Origin: Macrostomum lignano
Lineage: Eukaryota
Assembly: GCA_002269645.1 (NCBI GenBank)
Contig: NIVC01004738.1
Location: forward strand, 1 to 36,497
DNA length: 36,497 nucleotides
Direction of reading: 5' to 3'
In this document: positions 1,046 through 36,497 of the stretch, piece by piece
Position numbering within the stretch: the first letter of the stretch is position 1
Layout of the letters: each line of letters opens with the position of its first letter
Notes under the pieces: generated by a model
Databases searched by the model: none
Seen by the model: the letters and a program-made list of their open reading frames with translations, nothing else
Told to the model about the DNA's origin: nothing
Made by a program: the position numbers and the translations under genes

Positions 1046-4000
1046 CTGCAGGGATGGTGAAAGAGAATGAAATCCTGCATTCGTCGGCATTCATGAAGAC
1101 CGTGTGTGTAGACAGGAGGGACTGTAGGAGACCATCCTCTTCCAACTTCGTTCATAGCCAGATGATCAATATCAAAGATATAATCAAGGATGTCCTCAGA
1201 CAAGTAACCTGGCATGGGCCTGTTTTGTATCTGTTAGGAGCTAGTAAAGAATGCCTTATTAAGTAGTCTTGAGTTGTGGCAGTGCCCTATGGGCTCCATT
1301 CTAGGGCATTCAATGTGATAGAATTTCTGTGTTTTGTAAATATTCAGCTCAAGATGTCTTTTATTACCCTGCGTAACGTTGCCGATGTACTCTCTGTAGA
1401 AGTCAATCCGGTGTTGGTCACTGGTGGTCCCGTCATTGTCAGAAACTCCGTTCTCCGTGACCACAAGGGCGGGTTGTCGTACCGCTCGCTGAGCCACTTG
1501 ATGCCCTCGCGAATGCCGAATGGTGTCACCTTGAGCCAGATGCTGCCGCTTCCAGGCCAGCTGGGATCCAGAGAGGAAACCAAGTCCTGATCGTCATAGT
1601 ATCCGCCATCGTTGCTCAGTATTTTGTGCTCAGCAATGCTGGAGGTGTAATAGTTCAGGCCGAAGAAGTCGCTGGAGCCTTTCAGCTCGGCTTTCTCATC
1701 CGCTGTGAACTCGGGCAGCCTGAGGAAAAAACAAAGGAGAGCAACGAGACCTTTAGAAGGGCTTAAAAATCTTTATCCAGCAACGATATCTGTCTGAAAA
1801 TCTAAAGTGAAGCATAAAAAATAAGCGGTCTGTTTCCGGGACGAATGAAGCCGGCAAAGACATCCTGCTTGCAGCTGTCTTCATCTGAACACGCACTAAG
1901 GAACGTGTTCGAAAGAAAAGCTGGGCAAACTAGACAAACAGAAACCGGATTCGAACCCGATTGGAGGCTGATATTTCTAAAGCCAGTTTAATACGTAGCC
2001 AAACTGACTTGAACGGTCAGAAGTTCGTACCTTGACTTTGGCAAGCCGGCTGCCGCACTCTTGTTACCGATCCGGGTCTTCATCTCCTCGGGTAGTCGCC
2101 GAAGTACACCGGGTCGGAGTACCAGCCAAACATGAACTCCATCTCTGAGCGGCTTTCTTGTCCAATTCGCTGGACGGGTCCTTCGGCAAGACGTAGGCGC
2201 CATTGAGCGTGATGCCAACTTTGCCCTGCGTGGCTTGAAGTCTTTCTCGTAGATCCTGTAGGCCTTGGCGTGGGCGCGCAGGAGATTGTGTCCCACAATG
2301 TACAGGGTAGTCTTTAACTCCTTCTTGCCGGGCGCGTGTCTGCCTTCTCCGTTGCCCACCACGTTGAACACCCAGGGCTCGTTGAATGTGATCCACCACT
2401 TGACCTGGATGGAAGAAATGGAGGATTTTCATAGAAAAGTACAAGTACATCGATTCTTGGAGCCATCGATAGATGGCTATAAGGTAACGTACGAGTTTAA
2501 AAGAAAAAAATGCTGTGTGCTGTGAATGTGCGTGCTCTAGTTTACGATAGGCCGACGACACAGCCCTCAGTGTTTCAGCAGCGTTGGTCGTTGGACCCAG
2601 GATTGACTGCAGCATGACTTGACTGACTGCTTATGCACCGGTAAACTGTGCCATTGACATTTCTTGCGTTAATACGTCTGCTCATCCCACCCGTATTCTG
2701 TCACCTTTTTGCGTGGGGTGATGTTGTGAAAATGCATGCCCTATGCTATTACGAGTAAATGTATGTGACGAACGCTCACTTATGTACACCTGTAAGTCAG
2801 ACAATGCTGCAGTTACAACAATCTGCAAATCATCCTATGGCTTTTGTTAAAACTGACGTTTTGATTCTGAGCTTTCGACTTCAACGCATTTTTGCGGTTT
2901 GCCAAGATTGCGAAACTGCGTGAGAACAGTGGTAAAGATTCCAAGGTCCCACACCATCAATCAATCTTGAAGATAAGTAATCAATTCACGTATGGGTTTG
3001 TCGCCAAGCAGAAAAAAGAGAGAAGAACTTTAAAGAAATTGCAAGAAACTTTTGGAGCGAAAAATAATACACTAACAATATTCAAGAGCTGATCCTTCAG
3101 TGAAACGGTGAACTGATAAGATAACAGATTTTCTTAGTTTGAGTCTTTAAATCAAGATATACCGACCGCTGTCTAAACCAAAGTCGTCAATGTCAAAAAA
3201 TTTCATCTATGAAAACTTGCTTATGACAACTTTCAACTCAAGCTAGAGATAAAGCGACAGTGTTTTGACAAACTGATAACGTCACCAGAAACCGTCGCAA
3301 ACAGGCCACCAAGTTTGTTGGCCCAGGTCCATGAGGAACGGTAAATTCATTCAATGACATTCTAAAATTCAACTGGAGGGTGTGTTAGTTTATATTCGCA
3401 CACCCAAGCTTAGGCGTCCGTTTTTGAGGCATTTTGGCTGATGCCTAACTCACACGGTTGGCTCTACAGCAAATGATCCTGCATGACACCCGTGTCTTTT
3501 CCCATCGAAAGAAAATTCCTAATCAGTTCACAACTAGCTTACCTTGTCGCCCAGCTTCTCGAACATCAGCTTGGCGTAGTCCACAAAGTGCGGAATGATC
3601 TGCTCGCTCTCCCAGCCTTCAAACTCATTCTGCAGAGTCAGCGGCAGATCCCAGTGGTAGAGAGTCGCCATGGGCTGAATTCCGTTTGCAAGCAGTTCGT
3701 CCACCAGGTTTACGTAATATTGAATGCCTTTCTCGTTTATGCCACCCGCCAGGGTTCCGTTGGGCAGAACTCGAGGCCAGGAGATCGAGAATCGGTAACC
3801 ATTGACGCCTAACTGTTTGAGCAGCTGGACATCCTCTTTGTACTTTTCATAGCTTCTGCAGGCTATGTCGCCGGTGCTGTTGTCCTTGATGGTGGTGCCG
3901 TTTCGGCGGACAAACTCGTCCCAGATGCTCATTCCTTTGCCTGCGAATGGTGTAATTCAAGATGGAGTTATTTCCAGACGTCATTTCCAAGCTATTTCCA

Positions 4001-4279
4001 AGCGACATCATCGAAGCCTCTTAACAGATACGCCATCAAAAACTGCGATGAAATCCACAGTGATCTTTAATTGATCGCTTATAGCACGTAGCTACTTTCT
4101 TGCCTTTAATTGCCACTCAAAGCTGGTATTCACTTACCGTCAACATCCCAGGCGCCCTCGATCTGGTAGGAGGACGTCGCCGTGCCCCAGATGAACTCCT
4201 GAGCGGTGCACTGTCGGGACATGCTGGTCAGCAGCAGAGTTAACGAAATCGCAGCGACTAGCGGCATTTGCAGCGTCAT
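750..4279 (-). CDS. GH1 beta-glucosidase / lactase-phlorizin hydrolase-like gene, copy A (5 exons; several -1/-4 indels, probably assembly errors)
   Basis: GH1 motifs read in order across GT-AG exons: signal peptide + WGTATSSYQIEGAW, SIWD, YRFSISWPR, TLYHWDLP, TFNEP (acid/base), GLNYY, VTENG (nucleophile), WSLMDNFEW, and C-terminal FGIVSVDF. Stop inferred at 750-752 after correcting one homopolymer indel; the literal stop is at 797-799. Confidence 0.9.
1368..1719 (-). CDS. GH1 copy A exon 4 (LPEFT...DFFGLNYY...WLKVTPFG...VTENG)
   Basis: Acceptor tttttcctcag ends at 1720 and the donor GTAAT starts at 1367. One -1 indel near 1467, in a C run on the coding strand. Confidence 0.85.
2031..2404 (-). 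CDS. GH1 copy A exon 3 (VKWWITFNEPW...AHAKAY...GDYPEEMK)
   Basis: Acceptor ccatccag ends at 2405 and the donor GTACG starts at 2030. Collinear with copy B exon 3 apart from indels of -1, -3, -4 and -1. Confidence 0.85.
3543..3940 (-). CDS. GH1 copy A exon 2 (GKGMSIWDEF...YRFSISWPR...TLYHWDLP...LGDK)
   Basis: Open 398-nt exon between acceptor cattcgcag and donor GTAAGC; phases fit exons 1 and 3. Confidence 0.95.
4138..4279 (-). CDS. GH1 copy A exon 1 (signal peptide + EFIWGTATSSYQIEGAWDVDG)
   Basis: ATG at 4279, hydrophobic leader MTLQMPLVAAISLTLLLTSM, donor GTAAGT at 4137. Confidence 0.9.
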
Positions 4280-6329: not shown

Positions 6330-6510
6330 CTGTCTGCAAGTCTGCAACTCGCATACGTCGACAACATCACCCTTCTACGTCGCGATCTGGCTGCCGCTCA
6401 ACGTGCTCCCACGCACTAGGCTCTTATGAGGAGGGTAACCCACGTTGGACTGGTGATTAACGCCTCCAAGACGGAAGTGCTTCATGTAGCTACTGACACG
6501 TCTGCTCCTG
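6330..6510 (+). mobile_element. Short non-LTR reverse transcriptase fragment
   Basis: LQLAYVDNITLL (degenerate YADD) followed by HVGLVINASKTEVL, the typical motif after RT domain 5. Confidence 0.6.
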
Positions 6511-6539
6511 GCTCTGCCAAATGGAGATGTCATCAAGGT

Positions 6540-7085
6540 GTGCGAACACTTCCGTTACCTCCGCTCCGGCAATCCCGCGTGGCTGTCCCATGTCCTTTCC
6601 CGCCCTGCGCAGGGCCCGGCCTGCTTGGACTTAACCGCAGGGACATCAGGGCGGTGACCATGGCCCTCTCGGGTCACGGCTGTTTTGCCAGGCATCGCCA
6701 CCTCCAGGGAAAAATCCACAGTGAGGAATGCCCATTCTGCCTCTCCGGTGTCGAGAATGCGGATCAATTCATCTGTGAATGCCCCGCCTTTACTCAGAAC
6801 AGGCTCACCTCCCTCGGCCAAAACCCGGACCTCTCCGATGTTTTCAGGCACGAGAATCTACCAGCTCATCCGCTACCTGAGGCCACCAAGCGAGCGACCA
6901 TCCACCTCCTGGACTCTCCGGAGGGGGACCGCGCTGCGGACAACGGCACCACCGGAACTCCCTGCGCGACACCGCAGCACTATAGCTGCCCGTGGTCACC
7001 AGGCGTTAGCGAAATGGGCGGCAACGCCTCCTAGCTGTTTCCAGACGCACGGAGCCCCCAGCTGCAGCTAAGTCAAGTAAGTCAG
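6540..7085 (+). mobile_element. 5'-truncated I-group (LOA/R1-like) non-LTR retrotransposon 3' end
   Basis: LLGLNRRDIRAVTMALSGHGCFARHRH...CPFC...ENADQFICECPAFTQNRLTSLG is the CCHC knuckle region that follows RNase H. Ends in the tail CAGCTAAGTCAAGTAAGTCA. Confidence 0.7.
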
Positions 7086-8713: not shown

Positions 8714-9233
8714 GGAGAGGTAATGGGAGGCCTGAAGGATCGGAGGAGAGGTAATGGGAGGCCTGAAGGATCGGAGGAGAGGCAATGGGAGGCCTGAAGG
8801 AACGAAGGAGAGGTAATGGGAGGCCTGAAGGATCGGAGGAGAGGTAATGGGAGGCCTGAAGGATCGGAGGAGAGGTAATGGGAGGCCTGAAGGATCGGAG
8901 GAGAGGTAATGGGAGGCCTGAAGGATCGGAGGAGAGGTAATGGGAGGCCTGAAGGATCGGAGGAGAGGTAATGGGAGGCCTGAAGGATCGGAGGAGAGGT
9001 AATGGGAGGCCTGAAGGATCGGAGGAGAGGTAATGGGAGGCCTGAAGGATCGGAGGAGAGGTAATGGGAGGCCTGAAGGATCGGAGGAGAGGTAATGGGA
9101 GGCCTGAAGGATCGGAGGAGAGGTAATGGGAGGCCTGAAGGATCGGAGGAGAGGTAATGGGAGGCCTGAAGGATCGGAGGAGAGGTAATGGGAGGCCTGA
9201 AGGATCGGAGGAGAGGTAATGGGAGGCCTGAAG
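8714..9233 (+). repeat. 31-bp minisatellite (AGGCCTGAAGGATCGGAGGAGAGGTAATGGG), about 17 copies, just 3' of PAK
   Basis: Period of 31 read directly (8821, 8852, ...); copies are nearly identical. Confidence 0.97.
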
Positions 9234-9357
9234 TATCTCTAAACCTGAAGTACTTTCTCAAGATTTTAAATACTTCCGAGAATCTCATTTACGTACACCG
9301 AAAAAAAAAAACTGAATGAATCCGATCCAGGCAATAAAAAGAAGTCCTTGAACCGAC

Positions 9358-13838
<4,481 letters not shown>

Positions 13839-13921
13839 GCCGCTGCCGCCGCTGCTGTGCGAATGAGCGGCGTCATTTTGGTGGCGGTGCTGCAATGATT
13901 TTGGGAATGGTTGCGATGTGT

Positions 13922-16259
13922 CAGCAGCTGTGAAATCCTGAGGGAGGAGAGTCAGTAGCTGTGGAATCCTGAGGGTGGAGAGTCAGCAGCTGCGGAGAGT
14001 CAGCAGCTGTGGAATCCTGAGGGTGGAGGGTCAGCAGCTGTGGAATCCTGAGGGAGGAGAGTCAGCAGCTGCGGAATCCTGAGGGTGGAGAGTCAGCAGC
14101 TGCGGAATCCTGAGGGTGGAGAGTCAGCAGCTGCGGAATCCTGAGGGTGGAGAGTCAGCAGCTGTGGAATCCTAAGGGCGGAGGGTCAGCAGCTGTGGAA
14201 TCCTGAGGGTGGAGAGTCAGCAGCTGTGGAATCCTGAGGGTGGAGAGTCAGCAGCTGTGGAATCCTGAGGGTGGAGAGTCAGCAGCTGTGGAATCCTGAG
14301 GGTGGAGAGTCAGCAGCTGTGGAATCCTGAGGGCGGAGGGTCAGCAGCTGCGGAGAGTCAGTAGCTGTGGAATCCTGAGGGTGGAGAGTCAGCAGCTGTG
14401 GAATCCTGAGGGCGGAGGGTCAGCAGCTACGGAGAGTCAGTAGCTGTGGAATCCTGAGGGTGGAGAGTCAGCAGCTGTGGAATCCTGAGGGTGGAGGGTC
14501 AGCAGCTGTGGAATCCTGAGGGTGGAGAGTCAGCAGCTGTGGAATCCTGAGGGTGGAGAGTCAGCAGCTGCGGAATCCTGAGGGTGGAGAGTCAGCAGCT
14601 GTGGAATCCTGAGGGCGGAGGGTCAGCAGCTACGGAGAGTCAGTAGCTGTGGAATCCTGAGGGTGGAGAGTCAGCAGCTGTGGAATCCTGAGGGTGGAGG
14701 GTCAGCAGCTGTGGAATCCTGAGGGTGGAGAGTCAGCAGCTGTGGAATCCTGAGGGTGGAGAGTCAGCAGCTGCGGAATCCTGAGGGTGGAGAGTCAGCA
14801 GCTGTGGAATCCTGAGGGTGGAGGGTCAGCAGCTGTGGAATCCTGAGGGTGGAGAGCCACCAGCTGTGGAATCCTGAGGGTGGAGAGTCAGCAGCTGTGG
14901 AATCCTGAGGGTGGAGAGTCAGCAGCTGTGGAATCCTGAGGGTGGAGAGTCAGCAGCTGTGGAATCCTGAGGGTGGAGAGTCAGCAGCTGTGGAATCCTG
15001 AGGGCGGAGGGTCAGCAGCTGCGGAGAGTCAGTAGCTGTGGAATCCTGAGGGTGGAGAGTCAGCAGCTGTGGAATCCTGAGGGTGGAGAGTCAGCAGCTG
15101 TGGAATCCTGAGGGCGGAGGGTCAGCAGCTGCGGAGAGTCAGTAGCTGTGGAATCCTGAGGGCGGAGGGTCAGCAGCTACGGAGAGTCAGTAGCTGTGGA
15201 ATCCTGAGGGCGGAGGGTCAGCAGCTGCGGAATCCTGAGGGTGGAGAGTCAGCAGCTGCGGAATCCTGAGGGTGGAGAGTCAGCAGCTGCGGAATCCTGA
15301 GGGTGGAGAGTCAGCAGCTGTGGAATCCTGAGGGTGGAGAGTCAGCAGCTGTGGAATCCTGAGGGTGGAGAGTCAGCAGCTGTGGAATCCTGAGGGTGGA
15401 GAGTCAGCAGCTGTGGAATCCTGAGGGTGGAGAGTCAGCAGCTGTGGAATCCTGAGGGCGGAGGGTCAGCAGCTGCGGAGAGTCAGTAGCTGTGGAATCC
15501 TGAGGGTGGAGAGTCAGCAGCTGTGGAATCCTGAGGGCGGAGGGTCAGCAGCTACGGAGAGTCAGTAGCTGTGGAATCCTGAGGGTGGAGAGTCAGCAGC
15601 TGTGGAATCCTGAGGGTGGAGGGTCAGCAGCTGTGGAATCCTGAGGGCGGAGGGTCAGCAGCTACGGAGAGTCAGTAGCTGTGGAATCCTGAGGGTGGAG
15701 AGTCAGCAGCTGTGGAATCCTGAGGGCGGAGGGTCAGCAGCTACGGAGAGTCAGTAGCTGTGGAATCCTGAGGGTGGAGAGTCAGCAGCTGTGGAATCCT
15801 GAGGGCGGAGGGTCAGCAGCTGCGGAGAGTCAGTAGCTGTGGAATCCTGAGGGTGGAGAGTCAGCAGCTGTGGAATCCTGAGGGTGGAGAGTCAGCAGCT
15901 GCGGAATCCTGAGGGTGGAGAGTCAGCAGCTGTGGAATCCTGAGGGTGGAGAGTCAGCAGCTGTGGAATCCTGAGGGTGGAGAGCCACCAGCTGTGGAAT
16001 CCTGAGGGTGGAGAGTCAGCAGCTGTGGAATCCTGAGGGTGGAGAGTCAGCAGCTGTGGAATCCTGAGGGTGGAGAGTCAGCAGCTGTGGAATCCTGAGG
16101 GTGGAGAGTCAGCAGCTGTGGAATCCTGAGGGCGGAGGGTCAGCAGCTGCGGAGAGTCAGTAGCTGTGGAATCCTGAGGGGGGAGAGTCAGCAGCTGTGG
16201 AATCCTGAGGGTGGAGAGTCAGCAGCTGTGGAGAGTCAGCAGCTGTGGAATCCTGAGGG
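13922..16259 (+). repeat. 31-bp satellite (CAGCTGTGGAATCCTGAGGGTGGAGAGTCAG), roughly 70 units with interspersed 17-bp partial units, immediately 5' of the PAK ATG
   Basis: Period of 31 (14221, 14252); recurrent variants GCGG/GTGG and CAGCTGCGGAGAGTCAGTAG. Confidence 0.97.
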
Positions 16260-17302
16260 CATGTGAAAGCCTGTGAAAGCGACCCACAAGGGGGGACTCA
16301 GGGTTGAATGATTAGGCTAAAGGATCTCAGTAATCCCTTATGCGTTTATTATTTCAAATTTCCCACTCAATCTCACCGTGTTTGAGCAGCCGCACAGCAT
16401 TGCACGTGCACGAATAGATATCAGTTTTTTTGATTACTTAGAACTATTTTTACCCAATTTCTGTCACTCTATAGGAACAAAATTCAGGTCAGGATTGCTT
16501 AGTATTAATAAGATTCATAGCCACGACTCTGCCGTCATAGGAAACAGGAAATCAGTCAATATAGTAACTGTGAAAACTAGCCAAATAGTAAACTCTCTCT
16601 CTGTGTCCATAGAATTCGGCCATGCGCACTTCCTATCCAATGTCAATGCAAATGCAAAGTGCTAACCTGCAGTCGGAAATTAATTAATACAATGATCACA
16701 CCCTTTAAGATTTCCTGTGCTTTAATCATTAATAGGCCAGGGAAAATTAAATTTTTATCACAAAACTTTTGCTCAATACTACTTGAAGTGTCATGAAACG
16801 TCAACTTTAGTTTTGGCATCTGGAATTTTGATTCCCAGATGCCAAAATAAAACTTCATTGGACCAAATAGACTCAGCAATACAAAAGGTAGGGTAGAGAT
16901 ATTGCTATTTTATATGACAGTTATAGAAAAAATGTGTGCTGCATCAACCTTTAATAGAAATTGCAATTATTACTTTCATTGCTACATTGTCAATTGTCAA
17001 AAACATAAACAAAGCAATTCAAATGCTATTTTTAGGCTCTGGAGCACTAGCTAAAAGCAATTGATATACAAAATCAATCTAGTTATATAGGCATGCAGTC
17101 TACAGTTTATAGTCCATACATGCGCAACTGCTGGCCGAGCTGGCCGATCCGGCCACCGTAAATTGTGGTGGACCAGGGTAAGTCGCAAAATTGAGTTGAC
17201 CAAAAACGAAAAAATGCAAGAGGAAAGAGCAATATAGGGAAGTAAAATGGTGAAGCAAAAGAAAAACAAGTTGCAGCAGAAGCAAATTAAGTTGCACAAA
17301 TG

Positions 17303-18018
17303 ATTAGGTAAGTCGCAAAAGGAGCAACTAAGTTGCAAAAAGGATTCGGTCAAGTCGCAAAAAGGATTAGGTAAGTCGCAAAAGGATTAGGTAAGTCGCA
17401 AAAGGGTTAGGTAAGTCGCAAAAAGGATTAGGTAAGTCGCAAAAGGATTAGGTAAGTCGCAAAATGAGCAACTAAGTCGCAAAAAGGATTAGGTCAAGTC
17501 GCAAAAAGATTAGGTAAGTCGCAAAAAGGATTAGGTAAGTCGCAAAAGGATTAGGTAAGTCGCAAAAAGGATTAGGTAAGTCGCAAAAGGATTAGGTAAG
17601 TCGCAAAAGGAGCAACTAAGTCGCAAAAAGGATTAGGTCAAGTCGCAAAAAGGATTAGGTAAGTCGCAAAAGGATTAGGTAAGTCGCAAAAGGGTTAGGT
17701 AAGTCGCAAAAGGAGCAACTAAGTCGCAAAAAGGATTAGGTCAAGTCGCAAAAAGATTAGGTAAGTCGCAAAAAGGATTAGGTAAGTCGCAAAAGGGTTA
17801 GGTAAGTCGCAAAAGGAGCAACTAAGTTGCAAAAAGGATTAGGTAAGTCGCAAAAGGAGCAACTAAGTCGCAAAAAGGATTAGGTCAAGTCGCAAAAGGA
17901 TTAGGTAAGTCGCAAAAAGGATTGGGTAAGTCGCAAAAAGGATTAGATAAGTCGCAAAAAGGATTAGGTAAGTCGCAAAAGGAGCAACTAAGTCGCAATA
18001 AGAGGGAAGTAAGTCGCA
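17303..18018 (+). repeat. 20-22 bp tandem array (TAAGTCGCAAAAAGGATTAGG), about 33 copies, inside the hAT element
   Basis: The unit contains the TAAGTCGCA motif also found singly near the element's right end (19473-19504). Confidence 0.93.
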
Positions 18019-18244
18019 ATCAGAGGCGATCAAGGGGTAGTAGGTGCAAGTGTGGCAGGAGAGCAAAAAAAACAGAATAGAAGCCTTCAACCATAGACAA
18101 GATCTTTGAAATCAGCAGCCTATGTCAACAGTTTCCCATTGATTTCTTTAACTCCGGAGCAGGGGTCGGCAAAGTCCAGCTCGCGAAGCCCCTCTATCTG
18201 GCCCTCGCCCCTCGGGTTCTTTGAAACTTTCTAACTAGCAAGGT

Positions 18245-18955
18245 TAGTGTCTCTTCAACTCTCATCTCTCTCTTCTTCTCTACCTTGCCTCCCCTCTTCT
18301 CTCTCTCTCCCTTTTCCCTCTTCTCTCTCCTTTCATTTTTACTCTCCTCTCTTCTCCCCTCTCCTTTCTCCCCTTTCTCTCTACCCTTTCTCCTCAATGC
18401 CCTCTTCTCTCCTCTTATCTTCAGCAAAAATGTGTGCATATTTTCTTAGTTCAAAGTAGAGGGAATAGAAGATTAGAGATAAGCAAACAGAGGAGAGGCG
18501 AGCGATGCAATGGGAGAAAAGATAGAAGATGAGAGAAAAGCTGAGGGAGGAGAGAGATGAGAGAGATGAGAGGAAAGAGGAAAGATATGATGATGGATGA
18601 GATCAGAAAAGAGAGGAAAGAGGAAAGAGGAGAGAAGAAAGGAGATAAGAGAGTAGACGAGAGAAGAGAGGATAAGGAGGAGATAAGAGGAGAGTGAAGA
18701 GAGGAGAGATAAGAGAGTAGAGAAGAGAGGAGAGATGAGATGAGAGAGTTGAGTGGAGAGAGACGAGAGGAGAGATAAGATGAGAGAGTAGAGTGAAGTG
18801 GAGAGAGACGAGAGGAGAGATAAGAATGTAGACAGGAGACAGAAGAGATAAGAGAGGAGGAAAGAGAGGAGAGAGGAGAGGAAGGAGAGAAGGGATGAGG
18901 GATGAGAGAGAAAAGAAAAAGAGGATGAGAAGATTGAGGAAAGGAGAGAATTTGC
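18245..18955. repeat. Polypyrimidine tract (18245-18420) followed by a polypurine GA tract (18470-18955)
   Basis: Low-complexity CT-rich then GA-rich sequence read directly. Confidence 0.9.
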
Positions 18956-19377
18956 AAAGGCCTCAAATCTTAATTTAACATGCATTTACTCCCATCCTTG
19001 TTTGCCTTTTTCCTAACTGTTAACAAGTTTTTGTTTGAGCATGACTTCAAATTTAAGAATCTATGCAAAATAGTTCCGGGAATTGGAATTCAGTGGTTTC
19101 AAAATCTGTGGGTTTTCACAGCTTGTATCTCTACTGGATTTGTATTCTGCATCTGATGAGCCATCTGAATCAGGGCTCTCATCTTCCATGCCAAATCGTC
19201 TAGCAAGTGAAATTATTCTTGAGCTATAGGCCACACTGTATTCACTTCACTTACTTCTAGACATTCATGAATCATGACTTTTGTCTTTACATGTCTTTAC
19301 TCATTGTCATCATTACTAATTGCCTCAGGCCGCCACTATGATATACTGATTAGCTGTAATAAAAACCGCGAAATCTG

Positions 19378-19442
19378 CACTAATTAGCTGGCGAGGCATT
19401 TAGCCTTTAAAATATGGTCATAGTTACTCCTGCCGTTTACCC
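19378..19442 (-). pseudogene. 28S rRNA-derived fragment (helix 69-71 / R2 target region), copy 1
   Basis: Ungapped 52/65 match to the conserved eukaryotic LSU sequence GGGTAAACGGCGGGAGTAACTATGACTCTCTTAAGGTAGCCAAATGCCTCGTCATCTAATTAGTG (reference recalled from memory, compared by hand). Confidence 0.9.
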
Positions 19443-19798
19443 ACAATTCTTTGTTTAGCTTTCTTACATAGGTAAGTCGCATTTTTGATCGAAAACTAAG
19501 TCGCACGGCCAGCGTAATTTCAGAAGTTGCGCATGTATGTTATAGTCAATGAGTCTACAATGAAGTTATACTTCTTTCTAGATATTTTCTAGATGTTTGG
19601 CAATAAAAAACAATCATCAGTATAGTTTATATGCTCTGCTATATGTTTAGTTCTTTTAGAATTCATAAGCAGCTATGTGAAAAATATAGAATTAAAAGTT
19701 TGAAACAGATTGCATTTTGCAACTTTGTTTTATCTATTATAGTTCAAAAGTCTTTAAATTTCAAAAACATGATAGGACCCTATTGTGGAATGACCCAT

Positions 19799-20089
19799 CA
19801 TATGCCCAAAACCTGTCCAACCTGTCCAAACTGGATGGATGAAATGGCTGCTGGCCATGAAAAATGAAAAATTGGGGGAAGAAAAAAAGGAGAGGGAGAG
19901 AAAAGGAAAAGAAAGGAGGGAGAAGAGAGAGGGAAAAGAGGAGAGAGAAAGAGAAGAAAAGAAAAGAGAAAAAGGCAAGAACAGTCATATACAAAGTGAA
20001 AATTAAGTCACAATTGGGAGGAACTAAGTTGCAAATCTGGACAAAACTAAGTTGCACTGGATGGGTGAAATTTTGATGTTGGGCATATA
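19799..20089 (+). mobile_element. hAT-type MITE (TIR YATATGCCCAA), GA-rich interior
   Basis: TIRs at 19799-19809 and 20079-20089; 8-bp TSD TGACCCAT at 19791-19798 and 20090-20097; AACTAAGTTGCA subterminal motifs related to family 1. Confidence 0.85.
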
Positions 20090-20109
20090 TGACCCATCAT
20101 AGATATATA

Positions 20110-22595
20110 TTCAAAAAATGAACTTTTTTTTACCTTTTTTTTCTATTTCACAATAATTCTTTTGCATGATTCTATAAAGCGCATGCCAGGTGTATTTTCT
20201 TAGGAGTGATGCATGCAACTGTGCATGCCTACTTTTGGCATGCAAGGCCAATGCACGCCTGAATTTTTGGGCATATACTATATGATCTAGAATGTGGTCC
20301 AACATATATATCACAAGTAAAATAGTTTTTCTGATATAAACTTAAATTTATGATATTAGGGATCACTTTCTTAGCATACTCTGTAACAGATTTTATAGTC
20401 TGGATGCATGCCCATATTCTCAAGTCTAGGCCAGTATTTAAAAAATAATTGACTTTTTTGCCTTGCAACAAAAAACCTTTTTGCACTGCATAAAAACTTT
20501 TTTGGCTAATAATTTGGTTAATTATGTATTTTTTGCCTTATGCTATTTGGTGTTAAATTGGGTCGGAGCGGTTGCTACCTGCGGATCAGCCCTGGGAGGG
20601 GCTTTGCCGCAATGGGCACTTCCAGGGGCCTAAGCCCGAGATACCCACTAAACTTAGTTAGACCCTAACGTCTTGGCTAGGGATGGGTGTGAACCACTAC
20701 TAACCCAAGCCTATGGACTAAGGAACTGCCAACCCAAAGTGGAATCAGGGATGGTGCTAAGACCGAGTCCACCTAGACCACCACCCAGTAGACAAGTCCT
20801 CGGGAGTGCGCGCAAAAAATGTTTGAAAAAATGCTTAGATTGCTACTAAGTGTGGTCCGAGAGCGGGGAAACCCCAGAAGTCTACAGAAAAGCAAAGGTT
20901 TGGAACTTAGGAGTTTGGCTGGAAGGCTTGTTTCCAAGGGCGAGTCTTCTATCAAGAGGTAAAAGTGCATAAACCCTCCTATAGGGCTGCAAGCCACAAG
21001 GGTATCACCTATCCAGCTTTAGATTGGAGGCCAGGCCAAGGGGTTGGGAAGGGGCACAAGGCGCAAGAGGACCCAGACTTAGCCAGTATCCCCAATTTGG
21101 GACGAACTTCCTACCCAGGACTCCAGTCCACTGTCAGGATGAGAGCCAAGACACAAGGGCAGGGAAACAGCCAGAGGAGCCAGCAGTGGACCAAGGTCAG
21201 AGCAAGATAGACCGGGCAGGGAGGGCAGAGCTCAAAACTCCAGGTTAGAGTGGCACTAAGCTGGTTAGTAGGTAGGCACTACCCAGTACGTACATTAAAG
21301 GGAATAAAAACAATAAAAACAATGGGAGAAGCCCCTGAACCCTATTAGCAGGTGGGGGTGAACCTGCAACCCGGGGCTCAGCCTCAGGACTGGCATGCTA
21401 CTAGGCTCTACCGTACACCTTTGTGAATGGTACTTCTTTCTTGCAGGGTGACTGGGGGGCTCAAGTCCCATTCTAGCCACACTGTAGTCCAGAGTACACA
21501 CTCACGCCAGGTACACCCCCCTAAACCAAGGCCGAGGGCCAAAAAACTAATTAGAATGAAAAAAAGTTTATTTTTAAAATAGGCACAGCCCCTCTAGGGT
21601 GGACCCTTAGTAATTGGGCTAGCAAGAGCCAGACTCAATCCAATTGCGCACAACCGTTAGACAGGCTACCAGAGAGTCAGTCAGGGTAAAAATAGTCAGA
21701 GACCGTCCTTTTATAGCAGAAAATTTATTAGCACAGTTTTTTAAATGCCTTATTAGGTTTAGGATCTTAAAAACTAGAAAACTTAAAATTTATATTATTA
21801 AAAATGAACTTTCTAATCTTTTTTCTTCTTAATATTAACTCTTCCACATGATTCTATAAAAAGGCATACCAGGTCAGTCAAGGTATATATGTGAATCTAT
21901 TTTCTTAGGAATAATATATACCAATTGTATATACCAAATTTTTGGGCATATACCATAGTTTGGATCATACTGGGTACATGCCCAAACAAAAATTAAAAAA
22001 TTACAAATGCATGCCAAAAATTTAGTGCATGCCCATTCTTAAAAATATGCTGGTGTTGCAACAATAAATGACCTTTTTAAACTGCATAATAGACATTTTT
22101 TAGCAATTATTTTGGTTGATTTTTTTGTTTTTTTTCAGCAATACTAAGTGTTGTGTGTTGATGGCTTTGCCATAGACATTTTTGTTACGACTGCGTTGAT
22201 GAATTGAACCATGAAATTGAGTTATGAAATAAATGATAGACGCGTCAGAGGTCAACAGACCACTAGACTGACAATTGCTAAAGGCTAAAGCCAAAAAGTA
22301 CAACACTAAGCCCTATTTGCAAAAAAAATTGATACATGCAAAAATTTGTATAAATGCTTTTTACAAGCTTAAAAAACTAGAAAGCTTGAAATTTATGCTT
22401 AAAAATAAACTTTTTTCATCTCTTTTCTACTTCATAATAACTCTTATATGTGATTCTATAAAATGCATACCAGGTATGTATGCATACTATTTTCACTGGA
22501 GTGATGCACACCAATTGTGCATGCCTACTTTTGGCATGCAAGGCCAATGCATGCCCAAATTTTTGGGCATATACTACATGATCCAGAGTATGGGA
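20110..22595 (-). repeat. Three dispersed, degenerate copies (about 20110-20510, 21830-22090, 22410-22595) of a GGCATAC-motif element related to the 23337-25441 transposon in inverted orientation
   Basis: Shared blocks such as GATTCTATAAA..GCATRCCAGGT and TTTTTGGGCATATAC; AAATGACCTTTTT near 22070 is the reverse complement of sequence near 23455. Confidence 0.65.
20560..21700 (-). mobile_element. GC-rich, CpG-depleted probable retroelement relic
   Basis: Composition differs sharply from the flanks. Only a weak LP..GGLGGLGLS motif (non-LTR RT C-terminus-like) is readable, near 20750-20830. Confidence 0.3.
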
Positions 22596-23109
22596 TAGGG
22601 GTTGCAATCCTGGGATCCTAGGATTTAGACATTTTTTGGGATTATAGGATCCTAGGATTAGAAGTCAGGATTATGTTGGGATTTGGGTTTAAAAATTAAT
22701 ATGTGAAAAATAGAAACTAAGTTATTGAAATAGTAAAAAGCAAGGTATTATGATTAATTTATGATGATATAGTACATGTACATGTGCACTATGCTGTGCA
22801 CTGTATAGTATGCAGTCCAGAAAGATAGCAGGGATAGATAAACTCTAACTTAGAGGCAGCACTAGCAGGCAGACCTTGGCTCCTAGGACAGGGAAAGAAA
22901 TAAAACTTGCTAAGATAAGATAGGCTGGGATAAGGTCTGGGCTCTGGGTATATGATTGGGTTTGGCTAGGTAACCCAAGAGGGGAATGAGAGCTTTGTGT
23001 ATTTATGTACACTGTAGTGTATATACACTTTATTGACTTTAACAATCTGCTCTGCCTCTGCATGAGGTGGTGGGTACAGGGAGGCCTAGAAAGTAGATGG
23101 CTACAAGAT

Positions 23110-23207
23110 CGGTTATTTTTTTGGGTGGGCATTTTTGCAACTTCCTTGGTTGGCCGCCAGATTGGTCGGCCAGATCGGCCGACTTGGCCAACTGTTGCGC
23201 ATGTATG
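23110..23207 (-). mobile_element. Solo terminal fragment of hAT family 1 in reverse orientation
   Basis: Reverse complement of the left end of 23786-24078, including the TIR GTTGCGCATGTATG at 23194-23207; no partner TIR found. Confidence 0.8.
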
Positions 23208-23785
23208 TTAACCATGTAGAAAATAAAAGCAAAAAATAAAAACTGTTCATTGGATTGAATTTTATTTTTCTTGAGTTCCTTTATTCATTTTGTAATATTA
23301 GGCAAGAACAATTAGGAGCAATGAGCAAGCTAAATGCCAGTGTGCAGATCATGTACCCATGTACACCAGAAAAAATTTAGGCATCCAGGACTTTGTATGC
23401 CAGTGTACGCCAAAAACAAAAAGTTGCGCTAAAATATACACTAAGAATTCCTAAAAAAAGGTCATTTGGTTTTCATGAGTAGAGTTTTCTAAAAAAGGCT
23501 TTTGTATGAAAAGTGTTTTTAAAATATTATGAATATTTTCAATTTAAACAAACTTAAATTATACCTACAAAAAATATAATGCAAAATTAATACTCTTAAA
23601 AAAATTACACTAATTTTATTTATTATTATTTAAAAGAAGCGAAAACTTTATCACTGACGATAAAAATTTTCCTTTACTTTACGTAAAAATGTTAATTTAC
23701 ATTATAATTTTCATGCACAGCATGAATTTATTCACCAAAATTTGTACACCAAAAAAGTATGCGTGGCTATGTTACTTGTGTATGC

Positions 23786-24078
23786 CATACATGCGCAACA
23801 GTTGGCCGAGTCGGCCGATCCGGCCGACCGATTTGGCGGCCAACCAAGGAAGTCGCAAAAATGCCCACCCGAAAAAATACCTAAGTAGTAGTACTAAGTA
23901 GCTGACGAGGCAATTTGACTTAATAAGACAGTCATAGTTACTCCTGCCGTTTACCCAAAGTTGCGTTAATTTTGCATTACGTTTTTTTACATGTCGCATT
24001 TTTGGCCAAAAACTACGTCGCATTTTTGTTAAAACTAAGTCGCATGGCCGACCGAATTTTAGAGGTTGCGCATGTATG
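23786..24078 (+). mobile_element. 293-bp MITE of hAT family 1 (TIR CATACATGCGCAAC)
   Basis: Perfect 14-bp TIRs; 8-bp TSD GTGTATGC at 23778-23785 and 24079-24086. Confidence 0.93.
23892..23956 (-). pseudogene. 28S rRNA-derived fragment (helix 69-71 / R2 target region), copy 2
   Basis: 52/65 ungapped match to the conserved LSU segment. Confidence 0.88.
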
Positions 24079-24126
24079 GTGTATGCCAATAGTGTATGCC
24101 AACAAAGTGCGCTAGGGGTTGTGTAT

Positions 24127-25348
24127 TAGTGATGGATCCGAATATTCGGATTCGGAATCCGAATCCGAAAAAAAGTCTTACTTTTATAGGAATCCGAATG
24201 CTTCGGATTCGGAAATTTTTTTTCCGAATATTTCCGAATGTGCTTCTAAAATTGAAATCTAAAATAAATATTACAAATCAAGAAACCAAAGCATGCAACC
24301 CATTAAATAAAGAAACTAAAAACTAAAAAGAAAGAAAATTAAAAGGCAAAGAGCAAAATCTATCACGTTATTCTTTTTTTCTACGATTGTCTATTTTTGC
24401 AGCAATATATGTTTAAAAAAGTTAAATAAGTGAATTTACTAAACCTAGGGACCCGTAAGACAATAAACCTAAAGTTACGGAAATATTTAGGTAATTATTG
24501 TTTAAGTGTAATAACAGGTTTTTTCAAAATGCAAAATTGCAACTGCACGGGTCACATGGACTGTACGTACGTACGGTAAAATTATCATAATTGCACTGTA
24601 TATATATGTCACTCATTAGCTATAGTCAGTAGTACTAGAATTAGATGTTAATGTAACATGGTAGAAGTAGAACTGAATTTCCCATCTAAGTCCGTCTCTT
24701 TAAATTTGGTTTCGCGATAGATATCAGTAGAGGTCAGACAAGCAGAAGATTTTGGTCATGCGTGAATTTTTCAAAGTCAGGCATGATCGTGATTGTGAAT
24801 TTATATTAGCATACATGTATATTGAGCTCGTAAGTTACAAGTGTTGAAAATAACAAACAAGAAAAGAAATCATACTCGTATATTGATAATAGCTACTTGG
24901 CCGTAATGCTGTCAAGTCAACAAATTTAAAATTTATTAATTCTTTACACATGAATCGTGTTCACGTTTTTTGGTAAATCAAAGTTGAAAAGTTATGTTTC
25001 TAATAAAAACATAAGCAGAAATTCACAACCATTGGAACAGGTTTCAACAAAATCACTATCGTGAAAAAATGGTCCTGAATTCACGATTGTGATCACATCC
25101 GACCCATAAGATAAAAGTACGAGTACGAATATAAGCCCAGGAGAGATGGAATCTTGTCAGTCAATTTATGTGCGCACTAATTAGATGACGAGACATTTTC
25201 GTAAATTAAAAGAGTTGTAGTTACTCCCGCCGTTTACCTTACACTTTTTGCTTATATTCGGAAACATTCGGATTTGGATTCGGATTTTTTTTGTACATTC
25301 GGATTCGGTTTCGGAAACTTGCAAAAATCCACATTCGGTCCATCACTA
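24127..25348 (+). mobile_element. Non-autonomous hAT-type element, family 2 (TIR TAGTGATGGA; ATTCGG/CCGAAT subterminal repeats)
   Basis: TIRs at 24127-24136 and 25339-25348; 8-bp TSD TTGTGTAT at 24119-24126 and 25349-25356. Confidence 0.92.
25162..25239 (-). pseudogene. 28S rRNA-derived fragment (helix 69-71 / R2 target region), copy 3
   Basis: 55/65 ungapped match over 25175-25239; similarity extends about 13 nt further (CAATTTATGTGCG vs CCATTCATGCGCG). Confidence 0.92.
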
Positions 25349-25615
25349 TTGTGTATGCCGATTATGTACGCCAAGGACTTAGGGTGGCCATTTTGTACAC
25401 CGGAAAAGTTCTGGCATACATGCATACCATCCGCAACCTGGGCTAAATGGTGTTAAAAACTTGAAAATGCATAAATGAGATGCTTGTTTCATTACTAAAA
25501 TCAGATTTTATGACATAATCAAGGTAAACTGGGAAGAAATCTCCAATCCTGAAGTCAATCCCAGGATCCTGGGATTTCTAGTTTTTAAATATTGGGATCC
25601 TAGGATGGAAAAAAG

Positions 25616-26426
25616 GGTTTCCATGCATTTCAGTGCCCGTGCTTTTCGGTGCCCGGCATTTCAGTGCCCCAGATTGCTTTTCAGTGCCTCAATTTATGAT
25701 GCCGAAATGATGATAATAAAAAAGAAATCCAATAAATGTTCAAAACGTTCGATATTCCTAATAAAAGCAGTGTTCATTTTGTTAAGCTGGCACGCTTCTT
25801 AAATTTAGAAAAATCCGGTCAATTTAATTGCATGCAATTGCTGTACAGTATGTAATCATAATCATGTAATATACAATACAATCTGGCGGCACTCAGCAAG
25901 CGTGCCAGTGCTATGAAGACTTAGTTAGGTAAATTTGAAATCCATTAACGATGCTACATATAGTTTTGATCAAAATTATGAAATGTGACAAGTCTACATG
26001 TATTTTAGTTAGTATTGATTTTTTGAATCACACGCGACCGACGATCATGTTTTGTTTCATAAAACTGCCTAGGAAATGAAGTGTGTATTATTTGATGAGC
26101 TGAAATGATTAGACCATAATCTATAAGATTTTATTATAAGCGCATTTGGGGCATTAGTTTAAAATTTTGATGTGGATGAGAATCGAGTAATTTCGAAAAC
26201 CATTTTTTTGAATTAAAACACCAGGTCAGCTTAACAAAATGAATAATACCTTGTTTTTTTAAGTAAGTAGGTACTGCAAAGACAAAGCACTCACTGCTAA
26301 ATTATAAGGGCTCAATTTCTATATTCTTGTGTCCAATTCCAATGTATAATTTGGGCACCGAAAAGCAAGCTAGGGCACCGAAATGCCGGGCACCGAAAAG
26401 CACAGGCACCGAAAAGTGTGGATACC
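25616..26426 (+). mobile_element. Non-autonomous element with GG-terminal, about 80-bp imperfect TIRs (TTTCGGTGCC repeats); Merlin-like
   Basis: Ends GGTTTCCA and TGGATACC; 8-bp TSD GAAAAAAG at 25608-25615 and 26427-26434. GG termini with an 8-bp TSD fit Merlin, but the superfamily call is inference. Confidence 0.75.
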
Positions 26427-33722: not shown

Positions 33723-33867
33723 ATGACGTCGCGAATGGCGTTTGTCGCTGCGATTGCAGTCACTCTGATGCTAATCAGCTCGGCTCCTGCACAGTGCACT
33801 GCTGAGGAGTTCCTCTGGGGCACGGCAACCTCCGCCTACCAGATCGAGGGTGCCTGGGATGTTGACG
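33723..33867 (+). CDS. GH1 copy B exon 1 (signal peptide + EEFLWGTATSAYQIEGAWDVDG)
   Basis: ATG at 33723, hydrophobic leader, donor GTGAGC at 33868. Confidence 0.92.
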
Positions 33868-33904
33868 GTGAGCGGATATTGCTGCAAAGTAGCTTTTAAC
33901 TCGT

Positions 33905-34240
33905 ACTTGACCTAACTTGACTTAGCTGAGGGTGGCCCGAAGGTACAGCAGGGAGCTAGAGGTGAAGGTCACCAATTCTGCCCACTCCTGTAGGCCAGCA
34001 GACAGGTAAAGGTGAGGGGTCGGTCAGGTGGTCCACCAGTCCGTTCTGCAGCGTTATCTTCCATGGGGATGGCTCGGCTTGTTTCCCGGAGCTGAAACTG
34101 GATGAGATGTCGGATGCTGTCTGGCTGACAGACCTCGTCGATGGACGGATTGGGCCCGAGGTACGTAGCGTAGCCGGTCTCTGGTGAAAAAAGGGCAGTG
34201 ACAGACAAAGTGCTGAGCCCATTAGTGGGCAGCGTAGCTG
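33905..34240 (-). mobile_element. Short 3' fragment of the I-group non-LTR family, inserted antisense in GH1 copy B intron 1
   Basis: The tail CAGCTAAGTCAAGT is identical to 7065-7078; the translation GYATYLGPNPSIDEVCQPDSIRHLIQF resembles RLTSLGQNPDLSDVF..LIRYL of 6540-7085. Confidence 0.65.
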
Positions 34241-34349
34241 GGATCTCGGAAGCGTTTCTTTTTTCACTTCCATTGGAGTTGCCTGATGCTTAATAATCAT
34301 TGATATCGAATTTTGAAGTTTCTTTGAGCCAATAACACACCATTCGCAG

Positions 34350-34747
34350 GCAAAGGAATGAGCATCTGGGACGAGTTTGTCCGTCGAAACGGCACCACCA
34401 TCAAGGACAACAGCACCGCCGACATAGCCTGCAGAAGCTATGAAAAGTACAAAGAGGATGTCCAGCTGCTCAAACAGCTGGGTGTTAACAGTTACCGATT
34501 CTCGATCTCCTGGCCTCGAGTTCTGCCCAACGGAACCCTGGCGGGTGGCATCAACGAGAAAGGCATTCAATATTACGTAAACCTGGTGGACGAACTGCTT
34601 GCAAACGGAATTCAGCCATTGGCGACTCTCTACCACTGGGACCTGCCGCTGACTCTGCAGAATGAGTTTGAAGGCTGGGAGAGCGAGCAGATCATTCCGC
34701 ACTTTGTGGACTACGCCGAGCTGATGTTCGAGAGGCTGGGCGACAAG
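34350..34747 (+). CDS. GH1 copy B exon 2 (donor reads TT instead of GT)
   Basis: 398 nt, the same length as copy A exon 2, with 14 differences. Confidence 0.92.
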
Positions 34748-35645
34748 TTGAGCTAGTAGATAGGCGATTAGTTAGCATTTTGGACTGCAGAGTGATTCAT
34801 GCCTGTACAACTCAGAGGGTCTTAAAAGAGTACTGTAAGATTAAGAACTTGTCGAAGAAGTCGTTTAATAACATTTTACGACAAATCTACGAGTATGTTC
34901 GAGTCCTTCAAGTTCATGCATTCGCCTTTACAATTTTGAAGACAACAAAATTGTTGTTTATTGAGAGGTCGAATGTCTCTAACTGAGTAGCCAATGAAAA
35001 CAACCAGGTTAGCACGGCAAGGCTCGTACGAGTATTTCTGGCGATACGAGAAACCCCAACTGAAATACAATATAAACGTCGATTCTGAATTCAAGCGAAA
35101 TTTCGAAATGATAAGATATTAACTTTTGCTTAGTTAGCCTTTAGTATTCCAGACCTGTCAAAAAGTTGCCGAGTTGATTAATACTGAACTTCGACAAAGT
35201 ATCTCTAATCAGTTCGGAAATTTCCATACCTCAAGCCCGGCCCTGCAAATTGATAATGGGACAGACCGAATCTTTTGTTAGAGTTGCCAAGTTCCCCCTT
35301 CAACCTAGAAAAATTGACGAAATAAATTACCTGTTCCATAGTTGCCAGCGCTCAGAAATTTTTTTTATTAGAGGCAGGGGGTTGTGTGCACCCTGGCGCA
35401 CTTTAAGCGACATAGGCACACAACCGGCGAGAGGCATTACTGCCCATTCCGCCGACTCCCCTGAGCAGGCATACAAGCGCGCGGATACGTACGCAGGCAC
35501 ACACTCACACAGGAGTGTACAGCGGCCCTAACTTTATTTTATCGTTAGGCATGTACACTTCACTGCGCCTTGGGGGGTTGGCTCTCAAGGCCGTTAATTG
35601 CACGAGCAAAGCCAAGCCGAGATTCCAATTCAGCTCCAAATTAAT

Positions 35646-35717
35646 GTGACTGCACTTGGAATCGAGCCTGGGTCGCTGGCACACCAGACAGCTGCGCTAC
35701 CGCTGGGCTACGCCCCC
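35646..35717 (-). mobile_element. tRNA-derived SINE head (pseudo-tRNA), antisense in GH1 copy B intron 2
   Basis: GGGGGCG-TAGCCCAGCGG (A box) and GGCTCGATTCC (B box) at tRNA spacing. The acceptor stem does not pair and the anticodon arm is irregular, so this is not a functional tRNA. Confidence 0.65.
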
Positions 35718-36115
35718 CCCCCCCGCGCTCAGAAATCACAGACGAAGGTCACCTGTGCAGTGAGTATCAGCAGTGACCTGTTTCACAAGAAAATATTTGT
35801 GAAAAATTGAGACTTCAGACACAGACACCAATATTGCGTAGCATGGGTTTTCCCCATTTTTTCTAAATTCCCCAATAAATAGCAATGCATTTTGATGAAA
35901 TGTTTTGGTTCGTACATAGTATACTCGATTGCCTGGATAATCTAGTAGACTACATGTACCCCATTATACGCTTTTTATCTAGAGCGCAATCTAAAACACA
36001 AACTATATTTCTCATAGTTATGGAGATTCTAATTTTGCATCTCCCGACAAGGCAACAAATCTTTACAAGAAACGACTTCTGCATAGAAACCAAACCCTTT
36101 TCCATTGCATTCCAG

Positions 36116-36497
36116 GTCAAGTGGTGGCTCACATTCAATGAGCCCTGGGTATTTACCGTGCTTGGTTACGGTCTGGGTGCCCACGCGCCTGGAACAAAAG
36201 ACCTTGTGAACACAGTGTACATTGTGTCGCACAATCTCCTGCGCGCCCACGCCAAGGCCTACAGGCTCTACGAGAAAGACTTCAAGCCCACGCAGCAGGG
36301 CAAAGTTGGCATCACGCTCAATGGCGCCTACGTCTTGCCGAAGGACCCGTCCAGCGAATTGGACAAGAAAGCCGCTCAGCGCTCGATGGAGTTCTCGTTT
36401 AGCTGGTACTCCGACCCGGTGTACTTCGGCGACTACCCCGAGGAGATGAAGACCCGGATCGGTAACAAGAGTGCGGCAGCCGGCTTGCCAAAGTCAA
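36116..36497 (+). CDS. GH1 copy B exon 3 (VKWWLTFNEPW...MEFSFSWYSDPVYFGDYPEEMK...), runs to the window end
   Basis: Acceptor cattccag ends at 36115; frame is open with no indels; gene continues beyond the window. Confidence 0.93.

Follow-up and report, generated by a model that had tools for sequence, protein, structure and literature searches.

A 28S Ribosomal DNA Fragment near One End of Two Unrelated Cut-and-Paste Transposon Families in Macrostomum lignano

A 36,497-nt stretch of the Macrostomum lignano genome (contig NIVC01004738.1, positions 1 to 36,497, forward strand; hereafter the window) contains a nest of repeats, bordered on one side by a PAK kinase gene and on the other by one member of an inverted pair of glycoside hydrolase family 1 (GH1) exons. 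Within this nest are three complete, nonautonomous cut-and-paste transposons, two belonging to one family (A1 and A3, family A) and one to another (B, family B). All three, the only elements here that still have a right end, carry a piece of the 28S rRNA gene close to it. We consider the presence of this ribosomal DNA (rDNA) in both families to be real, statistically secure, and apparently undescribed. It is documented by three copies, representing two captures at most, in one 36.5-kb window. Coordinates are given in Table 1.

Perfect 8-bp target site duplications (TSDs), verified by script, flank A1, A3, and B, which identifies all three as genuine transposition products. The family A terminal inverted repeat (TIR), CATACATGCGCAAC(T), is 14 to 15 bp long, and a TIR search found CATACATGCGCAAC five times in the window. 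Family A has subterminal AAGTCGCA motifs, amplified in A1 to ~35 tandem units that also show higher-order periodicity at 103 and 144 bp. The AAGTCGCAAAA motif of this array is found close to both termini of A1 and A3 as well; it is presumed to be a transposase-binding repeat, and the A1 array would be unusually large for such sites. Family B has a different TIR and subterminal repeats of TTCGGA/TCCGAA. A2 has neither a partner TIR nor the rDNA piece and is therefore a truncated or disrupted element. When A and B were compared by sensitive blastn, the rDNA piece was the only significant similarity. This bears out an earlier reading of the DNA made without database searches (here, the sequence-only reading), which had held the two families to be otherwise unrelated.

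The same reading had assigned both families to the hAT superfamily. The basis for this assignment is the 8-bp length of the TSDs and the shortness of the TIRs; the window contains no transposase, and the family A TIR begins with CATAC. TIRs of hAT elements are short (about 10 to 25 bp) and start with YARNG, which fits the TAGTG of family B and not the CATAC of family A. Arensburger et al. (2011) reportedly found that hAT targets follow nTnnnnAn in the Ac clade and nnnTAnnn in the Buster clade. The TSDs of A1 and A3 fit nnnTAnnn and that of B fits nTnnnnAn, a comparison of three sites only. From these terminal features, the hAT label appears reasonable for family B and less certain for family A, which could instead be P-like or belong to another group that makes 8-bp TSDs. 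An autonomous hAT partner would encode a transposase with a DDE/RNase H fold and a hAT dimerization domain; no element here encodes a protein with an identifiable domain. A Pfam search of eight window open reading frames (ORFs), two of them in or overlapping A1, found no domain, and A1 has no long ORF inside it. A protein database search for other translated copies with a 105-amino-acid (aa) ORF spanning A3 returned no match.

Table 1. Positions of the transposons, their target site duplications, and the 28S-derived pieces in the window
Feature	Position	Strand	Description
Element A1	17115..19539	+	2425 bp, nonautonomous cut-and-paste, family A (TIR search, TSD script check)
A1 TSD	17107-17114 and 19540-19547		TTATAGTC, 8 bp
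A1 tandem array	17288..18019	+	~35 copies of a 20-21-bp unit containing AAGTCGCAAAA (Tandem Repeats Finder)
Piece, copy 1	19378..19442	- (rRNA sense)	In A1, 97 bp from right end
Copy 1, half-site 1	19378-19401
Copy 1, degraded core	19402-19416
Copy 1, half-site 2	19417-19442
A2	23114..23207	-	Lone inverted family A left end, 94% identical to A3 left end
Element A3	23786..24078	+	293-bp miniature, family A
A3 TSD	23778-23785 and 24079-24086		GTGTATGC, 8 bp
Piece, copy 2	23892..23956	-	In A3, 122 bp from right end
Copy 2, half-site 1	23892-23915
Copy 2, core	23916-23930
Copy 2, half-site 2	23931-23956
Element B	24127..25348	+	1222 bp, nonautonomous, second family, TIR TAGTGATGGA
B TSD	24119-24126 and 25349-25356		TTGTGTAT, 8 bp
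Piece, copy 3	25140..25239	-	In B, 109 bp from right end; ~99-100 nt
Copy 3, half-site 1	25175-25198
Copy 3, core	25199-25213
Copy 3, half-site 2	25214-25239

Two other arrangements of the elements were considered and set aside. A composite element spanning 17115-23207 is contradicted by its mismatched flanks (TTATAGTC versus TTAACCAT) and by the perfect duplication around 17115-19539. Insertion of a transposon into rDNA is not seen either; the flanks are non-rDNA repeats, and nothing in the window outside the elements resembles rDNA. Between 23207 and 25430, one host repeat rich in GTGTATGCC-like motifs has received three independent insertions (the A2 end, A3, and B) within ~1 kb, which suggests that insertion is locally concentrated or that a certain target sequence is preferred.

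The three copies match a conserved 28S 65-mer at 52, 52, and 55 of 65 nt, exactly as the sequence-only reading had claimed. An independent repeat finder recovered them as a single three-copy family (D10; 19379-19448, 23893-23962, and 25176-25245). Two probes taken from opposite halves of the piece, a 21-mer and a 23-mer, each match the three piece sites only in the 36.5 kb, where 0 matches are expected. As real 28S references we used 42 genuine metagenome rDNA loci (among the matches listed). The whole window searched against these loci by blastn matched at the same three sites only (E = 5e-13, 2e-11, and 2e-18). In Rfam searches, 301 bases around copy 3 matched LSU_rRNA_eukarya (RF02543) with 43 bits (E = 3.4e-9, model positions 2130-2335), while the copy 1 sub-window gave a weak match below significance (12.8 bits, E = 0.68) and the large-subunit (LSU) model was not detected in the copy 2 sub-window. 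Whole-window Rfam searches, in gathering and E-value modes, gave no LSU match because their filters drop such short fragments. From Rfam, blastn against rDNA, and the consensus match, the piece is 28S derived and covers helices 68 to 71. The sequences with which it was compared are the Rfam consensus and rDNA of other eukaryotes, which may differ from M. lignano 28S. It is not part of a functional rRNA gene; no match in the window reached the gathering score, and 28S homology stops within ~100 to 130 nt. The matches that whole-window Rfam did return, to MIR7533 and CLRN1-AS1, were rejected as low-complexity noise. Those to MIR7533 are weak, fall on both strands in a GA/CT-rich low-complexity stretch of A1 (18339-18575), and are spurious.

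A script check confirmed the distances of the pieces from the right ends and the TIRs. The common orientation also held: the plus strand is rRNA antisense in every copy, so that the rRNA sense reads inward from near the right end. The claim that all copies have the same boundaries did not survive, since copy 3 continues 35 nt further inward into 28S, to 25140 instead of 25175. Beyond the outer side of all three copies, weak, decayed 28S homology continues for another 15 to 30 nt, to about 19453 in copy 1 and possibly to about 23972-23983 in copy 2. Given the inner and outer extensions, the original captures comprised ~95 nt or more in family A and ~130 nt in family B. The alignments thus indicate that the 65-mer is merely the best-preserved core of a fragment that was originally ~95 to 130 bp long. 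A further extension of copy 3 to model position 2130 (window position 25306) was not accepted as proven; the stretch is family B's own GAATCCGAA repeat, and the closing of a helix drives the alignment there. In our alignments, copies 1 and 2 have a scrambled 3' strand of helix 69. Family A has therefore not kept the stem of this helix, and rRNA-like RNA structure is not maintained. Two other origins for the piece were rejected. A retroposed rRNA fragment or an insert resembling a short interspersed element (SINE) would not account for it, since the piece lacks poly(A) and is not itself flanked by a duplication, and a small nucleolar RNA-like antisense guide is contradicted by the lack of a proper box C/D arrangement and by complementarity that is too long.

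The sequence next to the piece had been described as much more diverged than the piece itself. This is correct between the families, but within family A it is not: A1 and A3 are identical at 54/65 positions of the piece (83%), compared to 80/89 in the left end and 76/93 in the right end (82 to 90%), so the piece is no better conserved there than the surrounding element. Copies 1 and 2 have in common several derived changes, namely an A-to-C change in half-site 1, a C-to-T change in half-site 2, and four changes in the core, which indicates a single capture in family A. Changes were therefore counted on three independent branches (the family A ancestor, the A1-versus-A3 divergence, and family B). 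Of 27 branch changes, 17 fall in one 15-nt window at antisense positions 25-39, corresponding to R2 positions +5 to -10 (p = 4e-5 by a scan permutation that left the window position free). When this 15-nt window was set on family A alone, it held 6 of the 10 changes in family B (p = 0.007). Between A1 and A3, this core differs at 7/15 positions versus 26/182 in the flanks (p = 0.005), and it has thus evolved ~three times faster.

The limits of the half-sites on either side of the core were picked after the data had been seen. Between A1 and A3 the half-sites differ at 4/50 positions, which is not significantly different from the 26/182 of the flanks (p = 0.34); half-site 2 is identical at 26/26 positions. 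In family B, the half-sites have 4/50 changes compared to 10/35 in the 35-nt inner extension (p = 0.017). Position-by-position conservation shared between A and B was not significant over all 65 positions (p = 0.11).

Two stretches of 24 to 26 nt that are 83 to 100% identical to rRNA are long enough for small-RNA targeting, and the piRNA pathway of M. lignano is described as active in PMC4604429. The piece might accordingly act as a shield, either because silencing RNAs directed at the element would also strike the host 28S or because it gives rise to rRNA-like small RNAs. We regard this as extremely improbable. The piece makes up about 3 to 22% of each element, so the rest of the element would remain unshielded; its identity to rRNA is imperfect; and its position near one end is unexplained by such a role.

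The core coincides with the target of the R2 retrotransposon and of I-PpoI, which the sequence-only reading had stressed. This site turned out to be the least conserved part of the piece, with its insertion-site motif destroyed in family A. Bombyx R2 recognizes an upstream motif (RUM) at -34 to -22 and an insertion-site motif (RASIN, TTNANNT) at -6 to +1; cleavage in vitro is abolished by a T(+1)-to-A change and severely impaired when A(-3) is mutated (PMC10499050). These rules were established for silkworm R2, a member of a different clade, and flatworm R2 may recognize DNA in another way. The 13-bp upstream motif is contained in half-site 2. Copy 3 has the wild-type sequence, GTAAACGGCGGGA; copies 1 and 2 have GTAAACGGCAGGA, with a single change at -25, where Bombyx R2 sets no constraint. 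Its distance to the former nick position is the same in all three copies. Copy 1 (TTTTAAA) and copy 2 (TTATTAA) do not fit TTNANNT, even with a +1 shift included, and both carry T(+1)-to-A and A(-3)-to-T changes. In copy 3 the motif reads TTAATTT, in agreement with TTNANNT and correctly spaced. No R2 insertion is present in any of the copies, and no R2-like sequence is evident in the window.

Following the sequence-only reading, the piece could be imagined as a site at which the R2 machinery docks or lands, or as a decoy for it. The R2 protein would bind the upstream motif and then either insert, which would give R2 additional safe harbors, or be titrated without cutting. The well-kept upstream motif, its unchanged distance to the cleavage position, and the intact insertion-site motif of copy 3 agree with such a role, as does the occurrence of R2 elements in Platyhelminthes (PMC5035012; PMC12247875). 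Against it, no part of the piece is more degraded than the cleavage core, in which family A has both the change that abolishes cleavage by Bombyx R2 and a change at A(-3), where mutations severely impair it; the copies are free of R2 insertions; the recognition rules are those of another clade; and the advantage to a DNA transposon is unclear. We consider this explanation very unlikely, and for family A it is weakened by the changes in the core. Several of the metagenomic rDNA loci (L001, L003, L006, L012, L025, L026, L038, and L041) have a 28S gene, from environmental eukaryotes, that unrelated sequence (introns or R-type insertions) interrupts at or beside the same CTCTTAA/GGTAGC position, which illustrates heavy natural use of the site.

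The explanation that we favor, with a probability of roughly 45%, is that the piece is passenger host 28S rDNA that was captured during gap repair and whose nuclease core was later eroded. A template switch during repair of an excision gap would have copied rDNA into the interior of a nonautonomous element as filler. In family A this would have happened once, before A1 and A3 split; family B would have obtained its longer piece separately or through exchange. The piece lies at the inner edge of a right subterminal segment of ~100 to 120 bp that every mobile copy would need, and for this reason it would travel with the segment. Thereafter it has eroded like ordinary element DNA, except for the 15-bp core, which has done so ~three times faster. 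Copies with an intact site may have been cut and then mutated in repair, or invaded by an R2-type element, so that mainly lineages with a dead site would persist. Judged from the pattern of changes, the fast core is most simply read as the loss or destruction of a nuclease target outside rDNA. Two details of the elements fit this account. The right-side homology of A1 and A3 starts exactly at the inner edge of the piece, and in A3 the piece lies where the left and right end segments meet, beside a short CTAAGTAG that is duplicated, as is usual for filler at a deletion junction. A passenger origin is favored because of the single origin in family A, the start of homology at the inner edge, the A3 junction, and the lack of extra conservation. 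The fast core, the loss of the cleavage motif and of the helix 69 stem in family A, and the occurrence of R2 in this phylum also speak for the account.

Several observations weigh against a passenger origin. Neutral capture leaves unexplained why two families have the same 65-nt core in the same orientation at 97 to 122 bp from the right end. A rough estimate of the chance of coincident captures is ~0.003 (0.03 for overlap within an rDNA unit of several kilobases, 0.5 for orientation, and 0.2 for end proximity); at ~0.3%, some nonrandom cause is likely. Had the piece simply been transferred by recombination, A and B should be similar on either side of it, and blastn found no such similarity. 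The half-sites are separated by exactly 15 nt in all three copies while the flanks are indel rich; at that rate a 65-nt stretch should have undergone ~4 indel events, and there are none. Repair of a cut, being error prone, would usually alter length. Gapped alignments also show that compensating indels may underlie part of the core divergence in family A, so that the count of independent events is overstated. To judge from its motif, copy 3 may still be cleavable by R2. Finally, the presence of R2 in M. lignano is an assumption, and the reference 28S is that of other eukaryotes.

Another explanation is pure coincidence followed by neutral decay, with independent captures that happen to overlap and an apparent core hot spot produced by a few compensating indels or by slippage in an A/T-rich stretch. 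The gapped alignments account for the cores of copies 1 and 2 by two or three small indels plus a few substitutions, which would make the independent events fewer than the 17 changes counted. Abundant rDNA is a likely template for ectopic repair, and sporadic rRNA fragments occur in other mobile elements (PMC12220804; review PMC10946416). Such an origin would have to produce region, orientation, and end distance jointly, at the ~0.003 estimated above, with no net change of length in any of the three copies. Copy 3, moreover, needs no indels, yet 6 of its 10 changes are in the same 15-nt window. We regard coincidence as unlikely.

The unexplained coincidence and the conserved length make a selected two-part module with a fixed spacer the main rival. 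The piece would be a cis-acting module under selection, consisting of two ~25-bp half-sites 15 bp apart that form a candidate protein-binding platform. The protein could be the transposase, a host rDNA-binding factor, or an R2-type protein, and it would aid transposition or localization. Such a module would be kept in minimal elements and be acquired by, or passed between, unrelated families. The shared core, similar end distance, and common orientation in two otherwise unrelated families are consistent with this, as is the presence of the piece in each element that retains its right end, including the 293-bp A3, which has lost everything further inward. So are the equal length of the three copies without indels amid indel-rich flanks, the complete identity of half-site 2 between copies 1 and 2, and the better preservation of the half-sites than of the inner extension in family B. 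On the other side, the family A half-sites do not significantly exceed subterminal DNA in conservation, the conservation shared between the families over the 65 positions is not significant either, and the half-site boundaries were chosen post hoc. The three copies have two origins at most, no binding protein is known, and the motifs that the families themselves repeat near their ends (AAGTCGCA and TTCGGA) bear no relation to the piece. On balance a selected module is doubtful. A more specific form of it, in which the piece was acquired or exchanged as a selected module with its half-sites, one of them the R2 upstream motif, at the native 15-bp spacing and its core disabled, so that an rDNA-specific protein (that of R2 or a host factor) would bind without cutting, is quite improbable.

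These explanations differ in what they would mean. If the sharing of the piece reflects selection, DNA transposons would have a cis-acting resource of a new kind or a connection to the R2/rDNA system, and a module with a disabled core would make these the first cut-and-paste transposons to exploit or decoy the rDNA/R2 machinery. For a passenger piece, the preferential erosion of its R2/I-PpoI core would be a natural record of the fate of rDNA nuclease targets placed outside rDNA, which bears on current efforts at site-specific gene insertion with R2 and on the off-target behavior of R2.

An exon of the PAK kinase gene encoding 304 aa (12981-13895, minus strand) is 100% identical to an M. lignano protein in UniRef. 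The region around it contains minisatellites at 8714-9237, 9819-10253, 10828-11648, 12592-12887, and 13994-16232, with 26- to 31-bp units in up to ~70 copies, in and around the introns. Several of them yield long spurious ORFs, for example, one of 642 aa at 10649-12577. The two ends of the window (2032-4214 and 33791-36497) are inverted copies of each other that are 80 to 100% complementary across several blocks. Each has a 132-aa GH1 exon (3534-3932, minus strand, and 34358-34756, plus strand), and the arms of this exon pair are 95% complementary. The arrangement is either a large inverted segmental duplication around ~30 kb or else an assembly palindrome.

The window contains other candidate mobile DNA. 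A G+C-rich block of ~1.1 kb without a long ORF (20560-21700) splits related A/T-rich repeat units of several hundred base pairs each (~20100-20560, 21800-22130, and 22400-22600; repeat family D12, 90% identical) and is probably another nested mobile element of unassigned type. A pair of inverted repeats (25616-25694 and 26348-26426) of 79 nt, 85% complementary and 653 nt apart, and GGGATCCTAGGATT-like motifs that recur, also at 22600-22680 and 25540-25600, suggest a further family of miniature inverted-repeat elements. An ORF at 6426-7071 has a C-terminal Cys/His motif (CPFC...H...C) like that of long interspersed elements and no Pfam match. It is possibly a degraded retrotransposon of the type without long terminal repeats and is not identifiable as R2.

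The piece was also sought outside the window. A metagenome scan with the family A 24-mer CATAGTTACTCCTGCCGTTTACCC found no transposon-borne locus among the 42 matches listed, which are genuine rDNA of other eukaryotes that naturally carry the T variant of CATAGTTACTCCTGCCGTTTACCC. A scan of viral contigs for the piece gave zero matches. In the full-text literature searched (Repbase and Dfam being outside its scope), we found no published 28S coding fragment near the end of a cut-and-paste transposon or common to unrelated families, in keeping with the statement in the sequence-only reading that no description was known.

In the filler DNA of Ac/Ds and P elements and in the transduplication of Pack-MULEs, a foreign fragment lies at a deletion junction and is inherited by the descendants, and such captures are normally confined to one lineage. 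The case here is unlike these captures in that the same host fragment is found in two unrelated families at an analogous position.

Mobile elements with rDNA-derived modules are already known, and a 2024 review (PMC10946416) tabulates them as 5S-derived SINEs and terminal-repeat retrotransposons in miniature (TRIMs), in which the module is a 5S promoter, SINE28, and the spacer repeats of Pokey; its table holds no 28S fragment in a cut-and-paste element. SINE28 (Longo et al. 2015, as summarized in PMC10946416) is likewise a dispersed mobile element with a 28S fragment. According to that summary, it is a mammalian retroposon in which 28S forms the element body, whereas the elements here have TIRs and 8-bp TSDs and carry 28S as a small internal module. 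Pokey, a piggyBac element of Daphnia, resembles them in being a DNA transposon with internal rDNA-derived sequence, but its cargo is intergenic spacer and it targets a 28S site, while the elements here belong to another superfamily and occupy non-rDNA sites. An R2 lineage of ray-finned fish has a 28S-like 3' untranslated region, again a segment near one end (Kojima et al. 2016, PMC5035012). This lineage is a retrotransposon that moves by target priming and probably gained the segment as its insertion site shifted (PMC5035012); cut-and-paste elements have no such use for target homology. Isolated rRNA fragments are also present in polinton-like viruses (PMC12220804). The 5S-derived modules of SINEs and of the Cassandra and Ajax TRIMs (PMC10946416) keep a working internal RNA polymerase III promoter, whereas the 28S segment from helix 68 to helix 71 has no known promoter or cis role; they are like the piece described here in having been acquired repeatedly by unrelated families.

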